This document shows positions 25,084-39,249 of a DNA stretch of 64,000 bases, in pieces. Source of the DNA: Ministeria vibrans ATCC 50519 (taxonomy: Eukaryota > Protista > Filasterea); assembly GCA_943704425.1 (NCBI GenBank), contig CALSCP010001735.1, positions 1-64,000 on the forward strand, given 5' to 3'. The stretch's first letter is position 1; the number at the start of each line of letters is the position of its first letter. The notes below the pieces were generated by a model, which worked only from the letters and a program-made list of their open reading frames with translations, did no database searches and was not told where the DNA came from. The translations under genes and the position numbers were made by a program.

Positions 25084-26651
25084 TATATCTACCTCCCNNN
25101 NNNNNNNNNNNNNNNNNNNNNNNNNNNNNNNNNNNNNNNNNNNNNNNNNNNNNNNNNNNNNNNNNNNNNNNNNNNNNNNNNNNNNNNNNNNNNNNNNNNN
25201 NNNNNNNNNNNNNNNNNNNNNNNNNNNNNNNNNNNNNNNNNNNNNNNNNNNNNNNNNNNNNNNNNNNNNNNNNNNNNNNNNNNNNNNNNNNNNNNNNNNN
25301 NNNNNNNNNNNNNNNNNNNNNNNNNNNNNNNNNNNNNNNNNNNNNNNNNNNNNNNNNNNNNNNNNNNNNNNNNNNNNNNNNNNNNNNNNNNNNNNNNNNN
25401 NNNNNNNNNNNNNNNNNNNNNNNNNNNNNNNNNNNNNNNNNNNNNNNNNNNNNNNNNNNNNNNNNNNNNNNNNNNNNNNNNNNNNNNNNNNNNNNNNNNN
25501 NNNNNNNNNNNNNNNNNNNNNNNNNNNNNNNNNNNNNNNNNNNNNNNNNNNNNNNNNNNNNNNNNNNNNNNNNNNNNNNNNNNNNNNNNNNNNNNNNNNN
25601 NNNNNNNNNNNNNNNNNNNNNNNNNNNNNNNNNNNNNNNNNNNNNNNNNNNNNNNNNNNNNNNNNNNNNNNNNNNNNNNNNNNNNNNNNNNNNNNNNNNN
25701 NNNNNNNNNNNNNNNNNNNNNNNNNNNNNNNNNNNNNNNNNNNNNNNNNNNNNNNNNNNNNNNNNNNNNNNNNNNNNNNNNNNNNNNNNNNNNNNNNNNN
25801 NNNNNNNNNNNNNNNNNNNNNNNNNNNNNNNNNNNNNNNNNNNNNNNNNNNNNNNNNNNNNNNNNNNNNNNNNNNNNNNNNNNNNNNNNNNNNNNNNNNN
25901 NNNNNNNNNNNNNNNNNNNNNNNNNNNNNNNNNNNNNNNNNNNNNNNNNNNNNNNNNNNNNNNNNNNNNNNNNNNNNNNNNNCTGTCTCTCTCAATCTGT
26001 CTCTCTCAATCTGTCTCTCTCAATCTGTCTCTCTCAGTCTGTCTGTCTCAATCTGTCTCTCTCACCTTCTCTTCGTCCGCCGCTGCTTTCTCCTCTGCGT
26101 TTTCTGCAGGCTTCTCTGTCGCGTTTCCTGTCGATCAATGGGGCATTTGTTAGAGACGAAGGGGGAAGCTCACCCCACCAGCTTGCCCCGTACCTGATGT
26201 GTACTCGCGCACCATGTGGTTGTAGTAGGCATGGTATGGACTTGACGGTTTGAGGAAATCGAATTTTGCGTTGTTTGCCTGTCAAAAGAAAGAGCAGCAT
26301 CCACGCGCGTGTAAGAAGTACGGACAGGCAAATGTAGTCGGAATGGAGGCAAGGCGGGGCGCGAGAGAGGGGCGAGGGGAGCGAGAAGAGAGCGAGAACC
26401 AAGAGACGACGAATTCTGTGCTGTGCGCTGGAGAAGAACGGGGCGCAGCGAGGGGCACGAGGGCGCGGCGTGAAGCACCGCCGAGACATGCGTGGGATGG
26501 CCCGTACCTCGGTTTGTGCGATCTTGTTTTGAAACTCATAACCATTTCGAGCGACAAAACTGGCTGTTTTGTCGACGACTCCCCTCACTTCGGGCGGGGG
26601 GTAGATCAGCCCGATGCCTGTCTGTCCGGGTAGCTCAGCCACATTCACCAT
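22971..26651 (-). CDS. SF3A1: Splicing factor SF3A1 (SAP114/Prp21); middle lies in an assembly gap
   Basis: SURP GLIYPPPEVRGVVDKTASFVARNGYEF; LKQLAERRTDIFG; C-terminal ubiquitin-like domain ending LAHYNV..LKERGGRKK. Confidence 0.93.
23785..23870. repeat. (AAT)n microsatellite in an SF3A1 intron
   Basis: Long perfect AAT run visible. Confidence 0.95.
24910..25060. repeat. ~39-bp minisatellite x3 merging into (CT)n
   Basis: Unit CTCTCTCTATCACTTTGTTTCTTTCTCCTTCCCTC occurs three times in tandem. Confidence 0.9.
25098..25983. other. Assembly gap (N run); smaller gaps at ~22202, ~34227-34277 and ~50634
   Basis: N characters flanked by microsatellites. Confidence 1.
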
Positions 26652-27056: not shown

Positions 27057-29375
27057 TTAGCGCCGATCCAACTCAAGGGACGAGGCCCAACCATCGACCA
27101 TTGGCACCTGCGCCTCATGTGCCTCTTCTTCATCCTCTCTCTGTCGGAGCTGCATCTGACTGTCTCCACTCGCACTACGACCACCACTACTACTACTAGC
27201 AGTACGATCTACACGCAGACTATTGGCCGCTGCTAAGCGGCGACGAACAACCACCAAAAGAAGGAGCGAGAGGAGTGCAACAGCGGCGACAGCGCCCACT
27301 GCAACACCCACGACCTGCCAAGTGGACAGTGTTGTGCTACCACCACCCGTGAGTCCACCACTCGAACTCACTGTGTACACACTGAATGAGGACACACACA
27401 GCGTCGCAATGCCACTTGTCATGTTCACGCGCGTCGGTGCGACAGGTTGCCAGTCATCCGACGACTCACTGCTTGCACGCAGAAACACAAGCGTGAAACC
27501 AGTCTCCAAAGCACTAGCATTGAATGCCATCTCAATGCACACTGACTCGCTCAGCACCGTTCCGTGCGGCAGCAACACCAAGTAGCCCAGTGCAAGGGCT
27601 GTCGTCGCCGTTGCGTCCGACACCGCCGTCTTGTCCACCAGTGCCGCAGAGACGACAATCGAGGCGTTGTTCAGCTCCCGTGCGCCCGTGGGTATGCGCA
27701 CCGTGACGCTCGAGTCTACTTGCAAGATAACTTCGCCCGTCCGCTCGGTCGCGTTGACAGGCACAGACACAGCTGACGCACACACACGATTGTTGACCAA
27801 CACGTCGGTGGACGTTGCGCACGAGCACTCAAACACCGAACCAACGACTGTTGTGCAGACAGCACCCGTGTGACAAGGAGACGACGCGCACGCATCCACC
27901 GGCGTCTCACAGTGCACGCCCGTGAAGGAAACAGCGCACTCACATGTGATACTAGCCACACCATCGCGACACACACCTTCGTTCAGACAGGGCGACGACC
28001 CACACTCGTCAACGTTCTCAGTGCATTGCACGCCCACAAAGCCATCGGTACAATTGCAGAAAATCCACACACCAGACGCGACATCGACAAGACACGCACC
28101 TCCATTGGCACACGGTGACGAGCTGCACCCGTCAATGGCAATGTCACACTGAGCGCCGGTCAGAGCCGCGCCACACGCACAGACATACTCATAGGGTGTG
28201 GTCTGCACACACGTACCGCCACCACACTGGGCGGACACACATGGATCAAGCTGCTGATCACACGTGTCTCCATGGTGACTAGACGTGCACTCGCACTCCC
28301 ACGACGTCCCATTCACTGCCACACAGGTGCCACCATTGGTACACGGGCTGCTATCACAGACGGTGCCAAGGAACACGTCGCACTTTGCGGCCGAATAGCC
28401 CGCCGAGCATGAACACTCAAACGTGCCCACACTTGAGCCTTCCGCACACGTACTACCATTAGCACACGGAGACGACGCACACTCATTGATGTCCTCCGTA
28501 CACTCAGAACCAGTCCAGCCGACAGTGCAGATGCACGCAAACGCGCTGGAACCGTCGACACACGTTCCGTTGTTCTGGCAGGGTGACGACACACACTTGT
28601 CCATCGCGGTATCACACGCGTCGCCAGTCCACCCGACAGCGCACTCGCAGCCATAGAAGAAGCCTTCGCCGTCCTCGTCGTCCTCCTGACACGTCGCTCC
28701 GTTAGCACAAGGCGATGATGCACAGGGTTCGTAGCGGACGACCGCAAAAACGTACAGTCCCTCGCCACACACCATCAGCACACCCGTCGTCGCATTCCGC
28801 TCAAACACCGCGTCCACGTCGCTCCCATCATCCGCCGTCATCTGTAGGTCAACCCAGGGAGCGCCGTCAGTGGCGCTTGCCGCTCCAAGCACAGTCATGT
28901 GTGTGAGCCAGGTGCCAAGCAGCTCGGCTCCCTGAACAAACACACATATTTGATCGGTGTATGCTTCGCCGGCCAATGTCACAACGGTAATGTTGTTTCC
29001 GCCCACCAGCGCAGTGTTCGACGGCAACGGAGTCCCATTGTCCTCGATCCACGCTGGCAGCGACACCATCGTGGCATCTAGCACATCGTCACTCGTCCAC
29101 ACTTCGGGCAAGTCATTTTTTACGAGAACACTGCGCGCAACAACCTTGATCGTCTCCGATGCATCTGTCGTTGCCTCATCAAATTCACTAACTGACCCCG
29201 CAAGTGCACGACGCGAAACTTGTCGCAACTCCTCCACTTCGCGACGTGTCACGACTCGGCGACGACGACGAAGAGGGGTGCGCCGCCGCCGCCGCCGACG
29301 AAGTGTAGTTCGTCGTCGTCGGCGCAAAACACGCGAGCGACGGCGCGTCGTATATCGACGCCTTGCAATGTAGAC

Positions 29376-29418
<43 letters not shown>

Positions 29419-32400
29419 GCATTGGACCAGCTGACTCGGCGCCGAACAGCGAGCGCTCGACGTCGCGTAGGTACTGGCAGTGGAGCTCGTCGTCGGCGCC
29501 GCTCGTTGTACCTGCATGTGGTAGCGGATGCACGCAGGTCACGGGCATCGCATTCGCAACGGAACGAAAGTGTGCCCGTCACAATGCACTCGGGAGTGCC
29601 TTCACAAGAACTGTCAACGCAAGTACACGCGCCTCCAACACCACACGGATTGCGCTGTGTCTCACACACCGCGCCAGAGTACAAGATGGGACAACGACAC
29701 CTATATCCTGGGAAATCTGGCACGCAGGTACCGCCATTGCGACACGGCGTGCTCAGACACGGCTCGATGAGACTCTGACATTGAGAGCCAGTTGTGTCTA
29801 TCGGGCAGACACACAATTCACAGTGTCCGCTCGTGGCAGAGCGAAGACTGCAGGTGCCCCCATTGCGGCATGCGTAGCTTGCCACCCCACTTCCTAGGCT
29901 CACTCGTGCCAACCAGGCCCCGCGCGAGTCTGCTGCACCAACAAGGAAGCCCGGTGCGCTCACGAGTGGCACGATCGAAAGTCGACCAACACTTGGTCCC
30001 CTCATACGTAAACTGCCAACCACCCTTCCCGCAACACAGGACGCTTTGCTTAGAGCACACTGAAAAAGCAACACCGTGCCGTCAGCTGTATGACGCATCA
30101 CAATAAACGCCGAGCCAAAAGCCGCTACGATGCGAGGCCAGGTACCTTCGGCGCGTCCCACACGCACGTCAAAACAATTTGTTCCCGTAAACTCACAGCT
30201 CGTCATCACAAGCATTTCGTCGCCGCCACCACCAGTGTTACCGCCGCTGCTCCATAGACTCGCCGCTAGCACACGGCGCGTCGTAGAATCAGTTGCGACA
30301 GCCGCATGACGCACAGTTGTGCCAAAATCGCCCCGTGTACTAATAACCATCGCCGACTGCACAACTCCCTGCGAGGTCGTGGACACGGATATAATAACAA
30401 GCTGCCCTCGCCAAATATCGGCGACAAAAGCACGTAGACCGTTCTGTTCGCTTGCAACGTCCGGCACTCCGTACACGTTTGAGGCGACCGTGTCACTGAC
30501 TGGCAATGCGCCATTTGAATTGCCGGCAAAGGCAATGACGTTGGCACGCAAGCGATCAGCCTCGCTGCACACAGTCGAAATCTTACCATGCGCAGCAGCA
30601 TACATTACACGCCCGCCAGCAGTACTAACCATTGCCGGTGAAATAGCGACAAGATCAGCGCCATTAGGAGCACTGCCAGAATAGACTGCCGTGCCACATA
30701 CACCATCGCTGCCTTGCTGGTCGGCTGTCGGGCGTGCCGGAGTCTGCCCAAGACCATAGACTGCACCCGACGCCGCTGCCGCAACCACCCGGGGGCCGAC
30801 TAGTTTCCCGGTAGGATTGGGTGTGTTCACTTGTACGATTGTGTCGCATGTCAGATTCGCGGTACAAACAGCCGTTGTACTGCGGAGCTGAGGTATAGCA
30901 CGAGGAAAAGCAAGCTGCTCCGAGAGTACGGCGTACACAGAGTCAGACTCGGCATTTACGCGACTTAGGGAAATGTGGGTAGCCGAGCTTGACGACATCG
31001 CTGGCGCAGTCAATGCAAGACGCCACTGAGAAGTGTGCCAGCTGGCGGCCTCACAGCGCGCACCATGCCGTCCAAAGGAACATTCGCAGCGAATCGTGCC
31101 CGCGCCGGCCAGACATCGCCCTCCCGGTCCACACGCGTCAACTGTGCACAAATCGAGAACTCGTTCACAGCGTGTGCCGGTGAATCCATTGGCACACACA
31201 CACGAAGGCGTACTGCCAATGCTGTAGCATGTACCTCCGTTGAAGCACATGCCCGCACATATGCTGCACTCGCTCATTAGCACTGTCACATCGAGCTCTG
31301 TGTTCACCACTGAAACAACAGTGTCAGTCAGTTGAGGTCGGTTCCGGGCGCTGGCAAGCATTGTTGCTCCAGAGCGAAGCGCGCTCATGCCCACCAGACC
31401 ACGAGCACTCAGGTTCAATTCAAGGCAACCGGTTGCGTTACGCTGACAGCGGAACACGGTGCGTGGTAGATCGACTGCTGCCTGAGGAGCCACAGTAAAG
31501 TCCACCGCGACGCCGGACACAGCTTTGACTGCATTAATAGATGCAGACGCTTCTGCCAAGGTCTCATTGCGCGAAGCAATGTGCTGCCACGCAAAGAACA
31601 AGTCGCCACTCGAAGAGCCCATAGAACTCACAAACACAAGCGGCACAACCGGCGAGGAGGGCACAGTCACGTGACTCATCAGGGTGCAGATGACCGCAGT
31701 ATTGTACACGACGGGGCACCGTAGTGCAATGACTGACAATGCCGGTGTCTGCGCAGTCAGCACCACGATCAGGCTGCTGCTGCCGGCGTCAAAATGCACA
31801 CCCGTGTGAATTGAGGACGGCAGCGCATTCCGACTCGTTTCCATCTGACTAAACGCAAAATCAGCACGCCAGTCGGACGCAATGCTGCTCGCCGCGGTGG
31901 GCGCATCAACCACAGTCGAGACAGCCGGATGGATGATGGCCACACTGATGGTATCGTTCGTCAAGATCACACAGGTCAAGAGAGCACCGGAACGCAGGGT
32001 GACGTGCAAGTGCGTGCAAAAGGGCGGAATACGCGGGTCGTTGACAAGAAGGGGGGAACCCCTGAGAGGCGTTGAGGTGACTGCAGCGGCATCGGCGGCC
32101 AGACGTGCACCCTGTTGCGTCTGTTGCACAAGCTTTACGAGGGTCAAATCACTCCATGGCAAAGCCGCTGGGTCTGTTGCAAGGGAGACAGCAACATATT
32201 GCTCGGCTGCGTCGTCCACAACAGAATCATCTATCGCAACAATGTCTTGGAACGACTGAAACGCAGCGACGAGGGTAACGCCAATGTCACAAACAACCAC
32301 GTCACTCCCGTTCAACAGACACTCGACAGCACCGAGACGTGCTTCACTGTCGGATGCGCGCAGCATCACTGCAAACCGATTACCGTACAGTTGATGCACA

Positions 32401-35400
32401 GAGCCAGTTGCAGTCCACCCCTCAACCCTGTACGCCGGCTGTGCTACGCAGGTCCAGGCTGGGGTACATCGGTCAAAATAAATGGTGGTTGCGCCCGCAG
32501 AGAAAGGGGCACCACGGAAGACAACTGCACCGCTACTCACGGGAAACACGCGTGGCTGCGCGGTAGACCTTGTCGACGGCATTCGGACGTCTACTACTGT
32601 CGCAACACAGCCGCACGTTGGCCCGAAAAACGTGGGAGGGCAAGTACAGGTGAAACTGCCAACTGTGTTGACACATGTACCGCCATTTTCGCACACATGA
32701 GGGTCACGGCACTCGTCAATGTCCCGTTCACAGTTTGCTCCGGCATAGCCAGCTGCACAGGTACAAGCGGCCGCGCCGGCGGGTCCCGCCACGCACTCAC
32801 CGCCATTCCGACAAGCGCCGTTGATCGAGCATACCGCCGAACAGTTCGTTGCGCGCCACGAAAGCCTTGATACAGTATTGTCCAGTGCGTGAACGAGAAC
32901 GTGTGCGTCGGTTGACTCCCCCCTCGATGACAACGGTGCTATTGTACGCATGGGGGTGCCGGATACGAGAAGAGTCAGGCGGTTGGAGCAGGATACAGAA
33001 GTGGTGCCAGCCAAGTCGGTTATAGAGCAAGTGGCGGTCGCCAGAGTGCTTTGCGTCCTGAACAGAATGACTAACGTGTCCGAGGGCGAGGAAGCAAAGG
33101 TGACAACCTCGGAGAATGGACCATTTCCCTCGTCGACAACACCCGACGTACATCGCAAGGAGGCTAACGTGCATACCACAATCGTTGGCCGTGGGAGAGC
33201 GCATACAATCGCCACTTTTCCGGCGTCCGCCAGGAGCTTCATTGCCGGCCCACCAGTGCACGCAACGCTTTCGACAAGGGACACGTCGACGGCGACACAG
33301 GTTGTATTTGAGAGCTGCTCCGACACAGAGCAGCGCACTACAACCACACGCGTTCTCTCAATGCTCAGCAAGACTATCACTTGCTCACGAGCAGCAAAAT
33401 ATAGCACCTGGTTCACAGTGACGTCGGCGGAGTCAGGCACAATCGAAACGGCGACAGCGATGCTTGTGCATGTCTGCGGAACAGCTTCAATCGACGTGGG
33501 GCACTGCGTGAGCAAGAGCGAAACAGATGTTCCATTTTGGTTTCGAAACTTCGTTGCAACGTACGTCACACTGCTGTCACCGTCTGCGGCACTTGATGTC
33601 GCCAGTGCCCACGAGGGCATCGCTTGACCACGACAAAATGTCTCAGGTGAATTGCCATCGCAACGTAAAATGACAGCGACGTCATCTTCTTGGCGAACAA
33701 CAGCAAATGCATTAGTGAGCGACGGTAAGGATGGCTCCAACACAGCGAGGACTTCAACAAATGGCGACTGCGTATCGTAAGCCACTTCAACGAGCTCCAC
33801 CGCCGCTTCACGAATAAGCGTCATATTTCCCGTGCCGTCAACGGCGACAATGAGGCCGGCGGTAAGACTAGCACGTGAGCTGGAAATGCTTAAAGATGAT
33901 GTGTCGAAAAGCACGGTGGAAGAGTCGACTAAGCAAACACGCTCACTGCACAGTGGTCCAGCGGTACCCGGGAGGCAGACACACGCAAAAGTCGATGCTA
34001 GGTTGATGCATGTTGCTCCAGCTGCACAAGGGTAGGAGAGGCAGCTGTCAATGCTCTTCGAGCACCGACGCCCTGTGAAAGTCGCCGAGCAGAGACACGT
34101 GTAGCCAGCGGTGGAAAGATCGTCGATGCACGTTCCACCATTCCAACACGGGTTGTTGGCACAAGCAAGAACGCACTGCCGTGTCTTAGCGTCACGCAAC
34201 ACCAGAACAGCCGAACGACTGGCGGANNNNNNNNNNNNNNNNNNNNNNNNNNNNNNNNNNNNNNNNNNNNNNNNNNNCCCCGGCTGTTTCACACGCGATA
34301 ATCGCCAACTGAGGAGCGGCGTTTGTGGCGGAGTTGACGTGACCGTTAACGACGCTCAGAAGCCGCGAGTTTGCCCCGTCGACAGCTGTGCGAATTGTGT
34401 AGCCCGAATTAGCAGTGGAGCGCTCCAGGGCGACTCTACACCGAGGGTTGCAAATAAAAATGACAAGATGGCCGGCGGTGGAAGAGATAGCAAAGCCCCA
34501 CAGAGACTGGGTGTCGTCAAGTGTAAAGGCAGCGAGGGCGAACGCATCGCTGGAAAATGGCACGGAAAACGTTTGAGAGACAGTCTGGAGAAGGGCACGT
34601 TGGCTATGTAGTGCTGTGCCAGTGCTCAGTTGCCCTATGGTCGAGCGCAACGACGGTAAAAAACTGGCAAGGTCACGCGTCACGACAGTGATGCGACGGT
34701 CAGGCCACACACGGACTACGCGTGAGCCGGAAGTTGAGCTGCTCAAAACGGACGCGCCAGAGTGCACGTTGAGAGGGACACCTGTCAAACTGACCGTCGA
34801 TGTCAATGTAATGTCGTACGAGGCGAACCCGTCAAGAAGATCAACCGAACCGCCAAGTGTCACCGATGGTGGCAAAACAAAGTTCCCCTTTGCGGCCGCA
34901 GCGAGCGTCGCCATTGAGGGAGAGGCCAGGCCAATGGGTGTCACGCTGCGCATCGACCATTTGAGGGTGCAGCCACTGAACGAGCATGTCAGCAGCTCTG
35001 TAAAGGCGCCAGCGTCGGCGCGTTGACCAAGCAATGACACGGTCATATTGGGTTCCGCCGTTGACATATATGTGCGGACGAGGTGAGATGACAAATGAAC
35101 GACGGCAAGCGAGCAGACTTTGACAGACAGTTCGCAGTCGCTCCCAGTAAACCCACTCGGGCAGACACAGCGATAAAGACCGGCAGAAACACCTTCTTCG
35201 GTGCACGAGGCGCCGTTGGAGCACGGAGACGAGGCACACTCGACAATGTTGCTTTCACATTGGGCACCGGTGAAGCCGGCGGGGCACTCGCACAAAAACT
35301 GTACAATATCGTCCAGGCATGTTCCGCCCGCAGCGCACGGCGACGACACGCACGGATCGACACGCTCTTCGCAGCGTCGTCCGATGAATTGTGATGGGCA

Positions 35401-38400
35401 CGTACACGTCCAATTACCGGAAGCGTCCGAGCATATACCGCCGTTCAGACAGGCGCCCAAGAAGCAAATGTTAAGGGCGGTCTCGCAGGCGGAGCCGGTG
35501 AAGCCAGCCGCACATGTACACACATGGGGATCCAGGGCAGACGTTGTACCGTTGATGAGCACGGGTGAACAAGATGCACCATTCTCACAGGGGTCCGAAA
35601 AGCACGAGCCAACAATCTCTGAGCAGGTGAGACCTCCGGTGATTCCATCACACTCGCATCGAGCTGCTCCATAGAGATCTTCGATACATGTAGCAGAGAC
35701 ATGACACGGCGATGACGAGCACTCGTGTATTTCAATGCCACAATGAACTCCAGTGAAACCAGGCAAGCACAAACACACATAAGGATCTTGTGCGTTGGTC
35801 GTCGCTACGTCACAAGTCGCGCCATTTTGACATGGTGACGACACACATGTGCCAAGAAACAGTTCGCAGTGCGCACCAACGTATCCAGCGACACACACAC
35901 ACGTTTTGAAGCCCAAGGTGTCCTCGGAACAGGTTGCGCCGTTTTCACATGGCGACGAAGCGCACTCTCCTCGGCGACACACGGGTTTGTATCGCGAGAA
36001 AACAGGACCCGGAATCACAGCAACGGTAGGTTGCAGCGGATGGCTCCACTTGAGCTGTAGCGACGAGACGGACACACCCTCAAAATACTCAACTTGAATG
36101 CGAACAGGGGTGCCAAGAAGGAGCGAGACGGAGGCAGAGTTCTCAGTGAGAGCAGGCGAGAACCAGCCGTCGATAAGAAGAACGCCGTTCAAGTAGAGAC
36201 GCGAGCCATCGTCGGCGACCAGAGAAAAGGAGTGCACTCCATTGGCAACTGGGCAAATGTAGCCATAAAGACGAAGTCCCCAATAGTCTGCCTCTGTCGC
36301 AGTGAAAGTGGAACCGTGGCTGAAGACATCATTTGTCTGAAACGACACTGGGCCTGACCAGGCAAAGAGCTGGGAAGGGAACGCTGCGACGTCCATGGTG
36401 GGAAAGTACTCGCTTTCCAAGCCAAACCCGTCCGCGTCGATTGCCGTCTCGCACGAGGATCCAGTGAATCCTGGCGAGCAAGCACATGCGACCGTGCTCT
36501 TCGCCACGGTGTGAGAGAAAAAATCACCGCTGATTAGGCGCCGAGCGAGACCAGGCGACGACCAAGAAAGCGCGAGACGATCGACGTCGACGCCCTCGTA
36601 ATAGTCGATGGCAATGGAGTGCAAGCCCTCCGTCAAAGTCCGTGTTGTACTGTGGTGGTCCACCGATGGATTGTGCCACTGTTGATAAACAATAGAGGAA
36701 AAACGAAGAGAACGACAAAAAAAATTAATAATAATAAAAATAATAATAATAATAACAATAATCAACGATGATAGTGTGTTACCAAATCGAATACAATGAC
36801 CCCGTCAATGTAGAGGCGGCATCCATCGTCACAGCTCAGGTACAGCGTATACGTGTCGGTTGATGGGACAGTAAGATTACCACGCAAGGCCAACGACCAG
36901 AGGTTGCAGACGGCCACACCTCCGATGGTCGCACCGCAGGCCGGCCCGAAGTGGAACTGCACTGGTCCAACTGTCGTGTAATTGCCAGAGACAGGGCCCT
37001 CTTGATGAATAGTATTCTGGTATACTTGGCCTAGAAGACCCGGTTTGACGTGTGTCGACGCGCAAGAGCCGCCATTGAAGCACGACTTGACAGCACCAGA
37101 GTTGCTGTCCTCGAGACAGGGATCACTTGTGAGAGTCTGTGCGGGCGCCGAGACATTGCCGCAAGGCTGGACAATACTGCCGACGGCACACATGCAAGCT
37201 GCGGTCTGTGTTGACGCGTACACCATAATGTTGTCGATGGCCCAAAACCAATCGTTGTCAGCGAGCAGAAATGCCCACTCGAGATCAACGTGTGTCAACC
37301 CCGCCTCGTGGGCCAGGGAGAGAATGACCTTGCGATTGTGTCCTGACCCGTTGGGTGTGTTCCAGTCGGGCATTGTGTTCGAGTCGACAAGGGCAGTCAC
37401 AGTGCCGTTTGGGAGTGTCGCTTTCACCGTCACACTAAAAGGAATTAGAAGAGGAATTAAAAAAGGGAGAAAGAAAGAAAAAAGGAATTATAATAACCAT
37501 TATCCAATCATTATACTTCAACAATTAATGCAAAAAAAAGTATGCGTGTCTCTTCCTCACCGGCTGTCAGAAGCTGGAATCCACAACGAGTCAAATGAGA
37601 CTTGGAGTGAATTAGAAACGACGTAGGCACTTGCAAAAGACACGCGTGTCCGCAAAAAGGTGTTGAACAAATTGTTTGCAACGTTGGTTCCATCACTGAA
37701 TTGATCGCCATCGGCTACAGCGATAACACCAGAGCCGAGAGTGAACCTAGGAAGTAGGGAGTAGCGTTGAAAGGATGAGGGAAATAAATTTAATATTATT
37801 ATTATAGAAGAAGAAGACGACATTTCCAATATTATAAAGTTTCTCACTGTGATCGCCCATTGTCGGCAGCTGTGGTAATCCACCATTGCTTGGAAAGAAA
37901 AGACCAACCATAAAACTCGATAGGGTTTCCGCTGGGTGTTTGGGAACGGTCTACAGTGAATCCCAATGGAGGGGTTTTCGTGTAGACAGCAGTCCCAGCG
38001 GACTCGGTCGATGAAACAGCGTCTTTGAGGACTAGTTGCTCAAAGTTCTCGTTCAAAAATGTTTCCGTGACAGCACCCGAGAGCGTGCAGGTACCGCCAC
38101 TCTCGCAAACTACGGCGGCGCACGGATCCGGATACACCGCCAAAGATGGCAAGGGCAACGTGGCAACAAGCAGAGTTATTACCAGCCCTATTGACCTCAC
38201 TGTGAGTACGAAACACGGAGTTACATCGGCAAAGGCAAAACAATAATAATAATAATAATAAAACAATTGAAAACATTATTAGAATTACAAGAATTAGAAG
38301 AAGAAGAAACAATATAATATTGGAGTAATAAATAATAAAATATTATTATTACTATAATAAAAATATTATTAGTGAAATTAATCATTTTCTGCCCAAGCCC

Positions 38401-38482
38401 CAAGGAAAGAAAAGTCGAAAGGCAATAAAAATAGACCTGACGGAAACATCCCAACCACATTAGCCCTCCGTGACAGTATCAT
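27057..38482 (-). CDS. Giant (~3,600 aa) type I membrane protein: signal peptide, bacterial-like beta domain, 2 PA14, many EGF repeats, Cys-knuckle modules, poly-Arg, 2 ZU5-like, TM, short tail
   Basis: Exon 1 MILSRRANVVGMFPS splices to VRSIGLVITLLVATLPLPSLA. ORFs 37844-38266, 37557-37907, 36762-37433, 34192-36765 and 27057-34292 are linked by GT-AG introns and one N gap. EGF motifs such as CASSPCANGATC and DINEC; PA14 SCDDGCRLYIDG and ADDGSRLYLNG; TM WQVVGVAVGAVAAVALLSLLLLVVV-RRR. Confidence 0.88.
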
Positions 38483-39249
38483 AATGCTATAACCGATTAA
38501 CCGTGGCGGACAGCAGTGTTGCAAAAGGAGCGGTCGATCTCAAACAGGGAGTGTTGGGGAGTGTGAGGTGTCAGCGATTTCGACGAAGGAAAGAAATTAG
38601 GCATTAGCTGCACAGGGAAGCGCATCCACTAGCCCGAAATCAGCACAGGACATGCATAAACAGTTAAAATCTACCTACCAGTAGCGCAGAGGTCCTGCAC
38701 AATTTATGCGACGCGAAATCGTTTTTTTTTTTTGTTTTTTTCACTAAACAATCAAAAAGCAGCCAAAATGCTATACCCCCGATCATATCAGCTTCTGGTG
38801 ACCACCGAAAAGGGGTTAAAACAGTCATAAATACCACGGACTAAACGGAAGCGATGAATGTTCCGCAATAATACCACATGTCGAAAAAAAATATTAAAAA
38901 TTAACAAAACGAAAAAGCCACTCGAACTGAACGTAGCCACACGTAAGGCCAACATCATACATGGGTTAGTTCACTTGTGCGCCTTACTGTTGGGTTGCTG
39001 AAGGGCTAGACGTTTTCAAGTTCTGAGGGGGAAGCAAGTGAAGAGAAAATAGATTGATTCATATCTAAGATTAAGGCAGGAAGATCGAACAATACCATTC
39101 TCCTTGCTTGGGGATCTTTGCATTCTTCCGAGGATATCCGCCAAGCATATCACCGCTCCACAGCTGTATCAACGAGCGTGTTCGCGACGACCGGCACTCC
39201 CTCGAAGAAGAAAATTCGAAGAAAGAGTGCAAGTGAATCTTCGACTCAG

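Follow-up and report, generated by a model that had tools for sequence, protein, structure and literature searches.

Ministeria vibrans ATCC 50519 is a marine filasterean protist. Its genome (NCBI GenBank assembly GCA_943704425.1; 29.7 Mb, 2,860 contigs) carries a great many giant EGF genes. The window analyzed here is a stretch of 64,000 nucleotides, positions 1 to 64,000 of the forward strand of contig CALSCP010001735.1. It contains a minus-strand gene of five exons, running from 38482 to 27057, whose 5´ end was read by eye from the sequence. This is one real, expressed gene, and its product is a type I membrane protein of about 3,700 amino acids (aa). From tip to membrane, the protein consists of a bacterial-type, jelly-roll-like domain and a first PA14 domain (PA14-1), both lying within loops of EGF repeats, a second PA14 domain (PA14-2), seven EGFs and four large modules (M1 to M4), followed by a poly-Arg tract, a domain that is perhaps Ig-like, eight EGFs, a ZU5 domain, a Ser/Gly linker, a single transmembrane (TM) helix and a short tail. 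An earlier reading by a model that saw the DNA alone (the sequence-only reading) had not recognized this architecture, and no described family with the same order was found in Pfam, NCBIfam, PDB sequences or searches of the literature. The features of the gene are as follows, in window coordinates.

38482-38437, minus strand: exon E1, with ATG at 38482, 15 codons plus 1 base and donor G|GTCTAT; a model only, without cover by an RNA contig
38199-37848, minus strand: exon E2, by-eye model
37746-37561, minus strand: exon E3, by-eye model
37434-36783, minus strand: exon E4, by-eye model
36678-27057, minus strand: exon E5, the last, about 9.9 kb
38138-38199, minus strand: hydrophobic core of the signal peptide and predicted cleavage site S-L-A|V, at the start of exon 2, from translation
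38087-38128, minus strand: first half of split EGF a (C-x4-C-x5-C), spaced as in the canonical EGFs of this protein
37218-38065, minus strand: bacterial-type domain of about 230 aa, in exons 2, 3 and 4, with introns 37847-37747 and 37560-37435
37161-37196, minus strand: second half of split EGF a (C-x-C-x8-C), by cysteine spacing
37062-37124, minus strand: first half of split EGF b (C-x11-C-x5-C), by cysteine spacing
36511-37040, minus strand: PA14-1, interrupted by the phase-0 intron 36782-36679
36451-36486, minus strand: second half of split EGF b (C-x-C-SPGFTGSS-C), by cysteine spacing
35989-36429, minus strand: PA14-2 (Pfam PA14, E 1e-17, 64.8 bits)
35113-35979, minus strand: EGF array 1, seven EGFs, by Pfam EGF and cysteine pattern
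34176-35112, minus strand: module M1, about 395 aa, containing an assembly gap; no Pfam match and no paralogue in the genome
33933-34175, minus strand: EGF pair, by cysteine pattern
32844-33932, minus strand: module M2, 364 aa; no paralogue in the genome
32607-32843, minus strand: EGF pair, by cysteine pattern
31269-32606, minus strand: module M3, 447 aa; no match in the genome
31053-31268, minus strand: EGF pair, by cysteine pattern
29871-31052, minus strand: module M4, 394 aa; no paralogue in the genome
29514-29870, minus strand: three EGF-like repeats, by cysteine pattern
29241-29507, minus strand: poly-Arg tract, from translation
28725-29240, minus strand: unassigned domain, perhaps Ig-like, between the poly-Arg tract and EGF array 2
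27780-28724, minus strand: EGF array 2, eight EGFs, by Pfam EGF and cysteine pattern
27360-27773, minus strand: ZU5 domain, recognized by the family profile and agreeing with the ZU5 fold
27381-27389, minus strand: S-F-S at the turn before the last ZU5 strand (model residues 141-143, between the last two strands)
27246-27320, minus strand: single TM helix, followed by RRR
27057-27245, minus strand: cytoplasmic tail of 62 aa plus stop codon, no Pfam family

All four introns have GT..AG borders; introns of this region are short and AT-rich, and exons have about 55% GC. Exons E1 to E4 hold 412 whole codons, and with the true length of the assembly gap the coding sequence totals 11,100 nt, exactly 3,700 codons. 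No in-frame ATG was found on reading exon 2 ahead of the hydrophobic core, which together with the predicted cleavage site represents the signal peptide announced by the sequence-only reading. The gap is the meeting point of two very long minus-strand open frames (27057-34292 and 34192-36765), and shorter frames reach 38266. The sequence-only reading had placed most of the protein in one or two huge exons, and almost the whole of it is indeed encoded by E5.

Four public runs (X1, X2, X7 and X8), which belong to three studies, supplied contigs that were aligned to positions 33000-38600 (5,601 letters). Runs X1 and X2 behave as RNA, since intron 37560-37435 is skipped exactly and introns and 5´ exons are thinly covered; X7 and X8 are DNA. 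The intron just mentioned is confirmed by one RNA contig. One contig of X1, 7,538 nt long, extends without a break from 36679 across the gap to about 29387, and the alignment of an X2 contig ends precisely at the end of E4 (36783), leaving 10 letters unplaced. Joints that appeared at 35241-35946 in the read layout were discarded as cross-matching of EGF repeats, their shorter side being only 20 letters long. Single-base differences among the public runs (33338-34011, and 37637 in exon 3, which changes F to L) suggest that several strains are in circulation.

Two ZU5-like domains had been claimed. The membrane-proximal one is a genuine ZU5 by profile and by model, and the other is not a ZU5, with an hhalign probability of 0.1 and an hmmsearch score of -0.6 bits, no better than shuffled sequences; it bears a weak likeness to an Ig domain. 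The ZU5 of this gene taken alone remains below threshold (16.1 bits, PF00791 cut-off 21); Pfam ZU5 is matched by four of the first seven members of its family in this genome (best 5e-8), and a profile of 16 members matches the ankyrin-2 ZU5 in PDB sequences at 1.5e-7. Matches of the same profile to designed Kelch proteins (SAKe) reflect a short "D-x-W" word and not homology. An AlphaFold model built with the 16-row alignment reached a pLDDT of 65.7, with a core of 70-90. Aligned with cleaved NLRP1 (6x6a_B), the model is matched up to residue 142, the Phe of SFS, and the NLRP1 chain up to 1212, so that this Phe falls at the end of the cleaved chain.

What follows the ZU5 is a Ser/Gly linker of about 15 aa and then the TM helix, with no UPA and death domain of the ZU5-UPA-death supramodule type. 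The ZU5 occupies the position of the Notch negative regulatory region (NRR), and no Notch or LNR family of Pfam was found at E <= 0.01. Neither RAM nor ankyrin repeats nor any other Pfam domain were found in the tail, and a single TM helix is present after the module in place of a 7TM domain. The sequence-only reading was therefore right that this is not Notch, and right about a TM helix and a short tail without catalytic domain, which it had put at about 55 aa. Self-cleavage has been demonstrated by experiment at HFS (PIDD, Nup98) and at SF|S (CARD8, NLRP1), and the first residue matters little (PMC3210808). The autopeptidases of ZU5, GPS and Nup98 have been grouped in one superfamily, found also in bacterial surface proteins (PMC3482391). 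By analogy with these systems we infer that the ZU5 module of this gene is a putative cut-and-hold device.

The poly-Arg tract, already seen in the sequence-only reading, contains 50 arginines in 89 aa (56%). All R-x-[KR]-R sites of the protein fall in it and none elsewhere, and at least two matches to the P-domain of kexin/furin convertases are encoded in the genome. A perfect (CGT)13 run lies within the tract at 29376-29414; the long X1 contig breaks there, so the length of the tract may vary between strains. The simplest reading of the tract is that of a predicted convertase hinge. Binding to anionic surfaces is an alternative that is inseparable from it here.

The anchor of this protein recurs elsewhere in the genome. 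A profile search gave 16 ZU5 matches, all with a TM helix after the ZU5, and 15 of them end in the order ZU5, Ser/Gly linker, TM helix, basic stop-transfer sequence and tail, which corresponds to at least 14 genes besides this one. Judged by these sequences, the scaffold of EGF stalk and ZU5-TM anchor is a lineage-specific family and not a one-off. The turn before the last strand occurs in three forms: HFS in six of the 16 matches, SFS or TFS in another six (SFS in this gene), and RRRR or RRRRR in four. A histidine in the "LLPHG" strand is present in all S/TFS members, in one of the six HFS members (L038) and in none of the polybasic ones, a pattern confounded by the kinship of the paralogues. 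The polybasic members (L039-L042, on contigs C320, C2169 and C2675 of the genome, G000) are without HFS or SFS and have RRRR or RRRRR, a T/S-rich stretch and G-x-Y before the last strand; in them a convertase site appears to have taken over from the self-cleavage site. In one HFS member (L048, G000:C572:51105-54425, 1501-2421 on the plus strand) the ZU5 match runs into a 7tm_2 region (Pfam E 2.2e-24) of secretin/adhesion type, of which the TM helix behind the ZU5 is the beginning, and this looks like an adhesion-GPCR-like gene with a ZU5-HFS juxtamembrane module. Most of the tails of L034-L047 share a hydrophobic-Glu-Met motif (NDLEM, TQMEM, NDIEM, GLEM, TLEM, QIEM, RIEM, EIEM, QVEM), located mostly about 15-30 aa past the TM helix (about 70 aa in L045), of which this gene has a degenerate copy, SQMQL. 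The motif may serve these proteins as a common signal for docking or sorting in the cytoplasm.

At the opposite end of the protein lies a head of two kinds of domain. The sequence-only reading was right about a bacterial-like domain: separate searches with E2, with E3 and with the first part of E4 matched successive parts of a tandem domain of about 230 aa with E values of 1e-5 to 3e-12. Across the three exons the matches are collinear with the bacterial sequence, at 32-41% identity (best match of each exon). Its bacterial holders are secreted/PEP-CTERM proteins of a Pirellulales metagenome-assembled genome (MAG), an Akkermansia MAG and Rhodovulum. The Akkermansia protein (L022, 1441-4329, plus strand) has two tandem copies of the domain plus PA14; in the Rhodovulum protein (L019, 37-5883, plus strand), which is 1,948 aa long, the domain halves stand in permuted order. 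There is no model of this domain in Pfam or NCBIfam, and its profile had no matches among PDB sequences. In a language-model search its closest neighbours were Cleaved_Adhesin clusters (0.90-0.95), no more than a lead; Pfam gave no Cleaved_Adhesin (PF07675) match for the exons or for their bacterial relatives. Neither the bacterial-type domain nor PA14-1 has a paralogue in this genome. In the bacterial proteins the domain is tandem and uninterrupted, whereas here it is a single copy, contains two spliceosomal introns and is inserted in an EGF, an arrangement that fits acquisition from bacteria followed by intron gain.

Both of the PA14 domains that had been claimed score above the Pfam cut-off. 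The part of PA14-1 in exon 4 reaches 31 bits with PF07691 (cut-off 24), and the domain continues across intron 4, as shown by an alignment of the opening 42 aa of E5 to the latter half of PA14-2 (E 1e-8). Both domains contain the DDG stretch known from the family consensus, in which the DD pair corresponds to the calcium site of flocculins; carbohydrate binding by the head is predicted. The EGFs said to flank the bacterial domain and PA14 are EGF sequence, but the first two are split EGFs that enclose the bacterial-type domain and PA14-1; judging by cysteine spacing, each insert follows the third cysteine of its EGF and precedes the fourth. In total, cysteine pattern and many matches to Pfam EGF give 26 EGFs in the protein, 24 complete and two split.

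We consider that the gene probably, though far from certainly, encodes an adhesion receptor with a lectin tip, which would be cleaved yet kept at the membrane. The distal head would bind glycans on another surface (a cell, a particle or the substratum), with the EGFs and modules serving as a long stalk. A first cut would be made by the ZU5 itself at SF|S and leave a stub of the last strand, TM helix and tail, as in FIIND, GAIN or SEA modules; a second would be made in the poly-Arg tract by a convertase of kexin/furin type. The cut ectodomain would stay held non-covalently, and a pull on the bound ligand could shed it or expose the stub.

Several points weigh against this proposal. Glycan binding, surface location and cleavage are all predictions. 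To our knowledge, ankyrin-type ZU5 domains do not self-cleave, so that the ZU5 fold alone proves nothing on cleavage, and the confidence of the ZU5 model is middling. Fifty arginines far exceed what a convertase needs and may have another role. The four modules, together about 1,600 aa or about 43% of the protein, are without an assigned fold. Word depth in the RNA-like runs is about 35 in E5, 2-4 in E3 and E4 and 0 in E1 and E2, and no contig of the four runs visibly spans intron 4. With RNA depth about ten times lower over E3 and E4 and zero over E1 and E2, what ties the head to E5 is splice-site logic, the continuity of a domain and the one overhang of 10 letters.

The membrane-anchored part could also be a mere carrier, which we regard as unlikely. 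The polybasic tract as the sole cluster of R-x-[KR]-R, the convertases suggested by the P-domains encoded in the genome and a short tail without known domain all suit this explanation. The stub left behind, however, would keep eight EGFs and a conserved ZU5 module common to at least 14 other membrane proteins, a costly outfit for a carrier.

Somewhat less probable still is an adhesin of flocculin type, acting in cell-cell adhesion, aggregation or mating, whose PA14 head would bind glycans of the same species and not prey. Two PA14 domains, each with DDG, and the domain logic of a head on a long stalk, the same as in Flo/Epa adhesins, speak for it. Nothing in the data separates same-species binding from binding of bacteria or algae; near-identical sequence is held by algal-culture, biofilm and seawater metagenomes, which are uninformative on the ligand. 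Cell-cell adhesion or a shed adhesive coat fits the domains equally well as the prey capture put forward by the sequence-only reading, which is a guess, as is the phagotrophic habit assumed with it.

About as doubtful as the flocculin-like adhesin is the possibility that the middle of the protein is a fast-evolving, largely unstructured spacer and that M1 to M4 are low-complexity filler without defined fold or ligand. The EGF arrays and four EGF-flanked modules are present as claimed, each module having about 360-450 aa and being followed by two or three EGFs. No relative was found for any module searched beyond this genome, and a search with each module gave no paralogue within it. Pfam had no match to M1-M4 at E <= 10, Ldl_recept_b (YWTD) included. 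M2 was without a relative among 1.84 billion representative proteins (HMMER), its sole match, a Gram-positive repeat protein, being a compositional repeat artefact; in the Atlas it gave only sub-threshold leads, DUF5018 and Lactonase (score <=0.89). M3 had no match in JGI metagenomes or PDB sequences, and M4 gave nothing meaningful among the latter. A word search with M3 and the ZU5-TM end (5.8 billion clusters, proteins of 1,314-4,180 aa) was blank, a weak negative, as the protein itself was also missed. The modules are scarcely alike, and the notion of four copies of one module was abandoned after pairwise comparison with shuffled sequences, in which scores were close to noise (M2-M4 z 3.1, M1-M2 z 2.0). 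Their composition is biased to V/S/T/A/L and, besides this bias and 15 copies of a strand-Cys-loop-Cys-strand motif, they share little. Finding no relatives left M2 without an alignment for modelling, and its single-sequence AlphaFold model has a pLDDT of 36.6, too low to be usable for a fold search.

Against a spacer stand the about 40% of hydrophobic residues in the modules, arranged in strand-like runs, the recurrence of the 15 motifs and the all-beta prediction for M2. Strain differences are also mostly synonymous: 33000-34226, which covers most of M2 and the preceding EGF pair, has five synonymous differences against two that change a residue (V to L, I to T). We read M1-M4 as folded beta domains of a type without match in these searches.

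The assembly gap lies in M1 at 34227-34277 and is written as 51 N, but its true length is 296 nt, so that about 99 codons are absent from the assembly. The sequence-only reading had advised a check across this gap. In contigs of X1, X2, X7 and X8 alike, 296 or 297 letters separate 34226 from 34278/34279. As one base (34278) is left over from the upstream frame and the downstream codon begins at 34226, the fill must be 2 mod 3, which 296 satisfies; at this length M1 reaches about 395 aa, much like its neighbours. That two genes meet here, or that scaffolding mis-joined an upstream secreted lectin/EGF protein to a downstream membrane protein, might be thought from the two frames lying one base apart with 51 N and from a fill known by length and not by letters, but it is very improbable, as the same 296 letters bridge the gap and restore the frame in four runs, two RNA-like, drawn from three studies, M1 then falls in the size class of M2 to M4, and the gap has no EGF boundary or terminator-like feature.

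Parts of the protein resemble several known systems. With Notch, Crumbs and Delta-type EGF receptors it shares type I topology, long Notch-like EGF arrays and a processing module adjacent to the membrane, but it is without LNR/NRR, RAM and ankyrin, its juxtamembrane module is a ZU5, it bears a lectin-like head and its stalk is broken by four orphan modules. It differs from adhesion GPCRs and polycystin-1 (GAIN/GPS) in having a single TM helix and no 7TM, in SFS or HFS in place of HL|T, and in best matches to ankyrin-type ZU5 and not to GAIN. The FIIND of NLRP1/CARD8 and the ZU5 of PIDD likewise have a ZU5 fold, with SF|S or HF|S placed in the turn that precedes the following strand; those modules are cytosolic and followed by UPA plus CARD or death domains, whereas the one described here is predicted to be extracellular and is followed by a linker and TM helix. 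Yeast flocculins and Epa adhesins likewise carry a PA14 head atop a long cell-surface stalk, yet they are anchored by GPI or in the wall and have a Ser/Thr-rich stalk, while this protein has an EGF stalk, a TM anchor and two PA14 domains, one of them nested in an EGF. The repeating unit, in which two EGFs accompany a large module predicted to be all-beta, recalls the EGF-propeller repeats of the LDL receptor and LRP, but the modules of this gene have no YWTD/Ldl_recept_b match.

A wider proposal can be made only tentatively. At least 15 single-pass receptors and one 7TM relative may have ectodomains tethered by an extracellular, self-cleaving ZU5 (HFS/SFS) or by a convertase site at the same turn; in that case GAIN (adhesion GPCRs, polycystin) and SEA/NRR (mucins, Notch) would be joined by a third juxtamembrane device of the cut-and-hold kind. 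To this scheme the present member would add a bacterial-derived lectin head in EGF loops, an extracellular hinge of 50 arginines and about 1,600 aa of folded beta modules, of which M2 is without detectable relative among about 1.8 billion representative proteins.

The next gene downstream, on the same strand, is SF3A1-like (SURP/SF3A1-like by eye) and starts near 26650. A second N gap, of 884 letters (25098-25981), lies within it and is flanked by GAGAGACAGATT-type repeats. The apparent block of 29% GC at 24-26 kb is due to this gap and is not a feature.

Membrane-proximal cut-and-hold modules allow Notch, mucins and adhesion GPCRs to turn pulling forces into signals. A family of extracellular ZU5 receptors in a unicellular eukaryote, if true, would provide a simple testable case, with three variants of the cleavage turn (HFS, SFS and polybasic) within one family. 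The gene described here also shows that a bacterial surface domain and PA14 can join a eukaryotic EGF scaffold through insertion into EGF loops, and that long coding stretches without detectable relatives can persist in an expressed gene.

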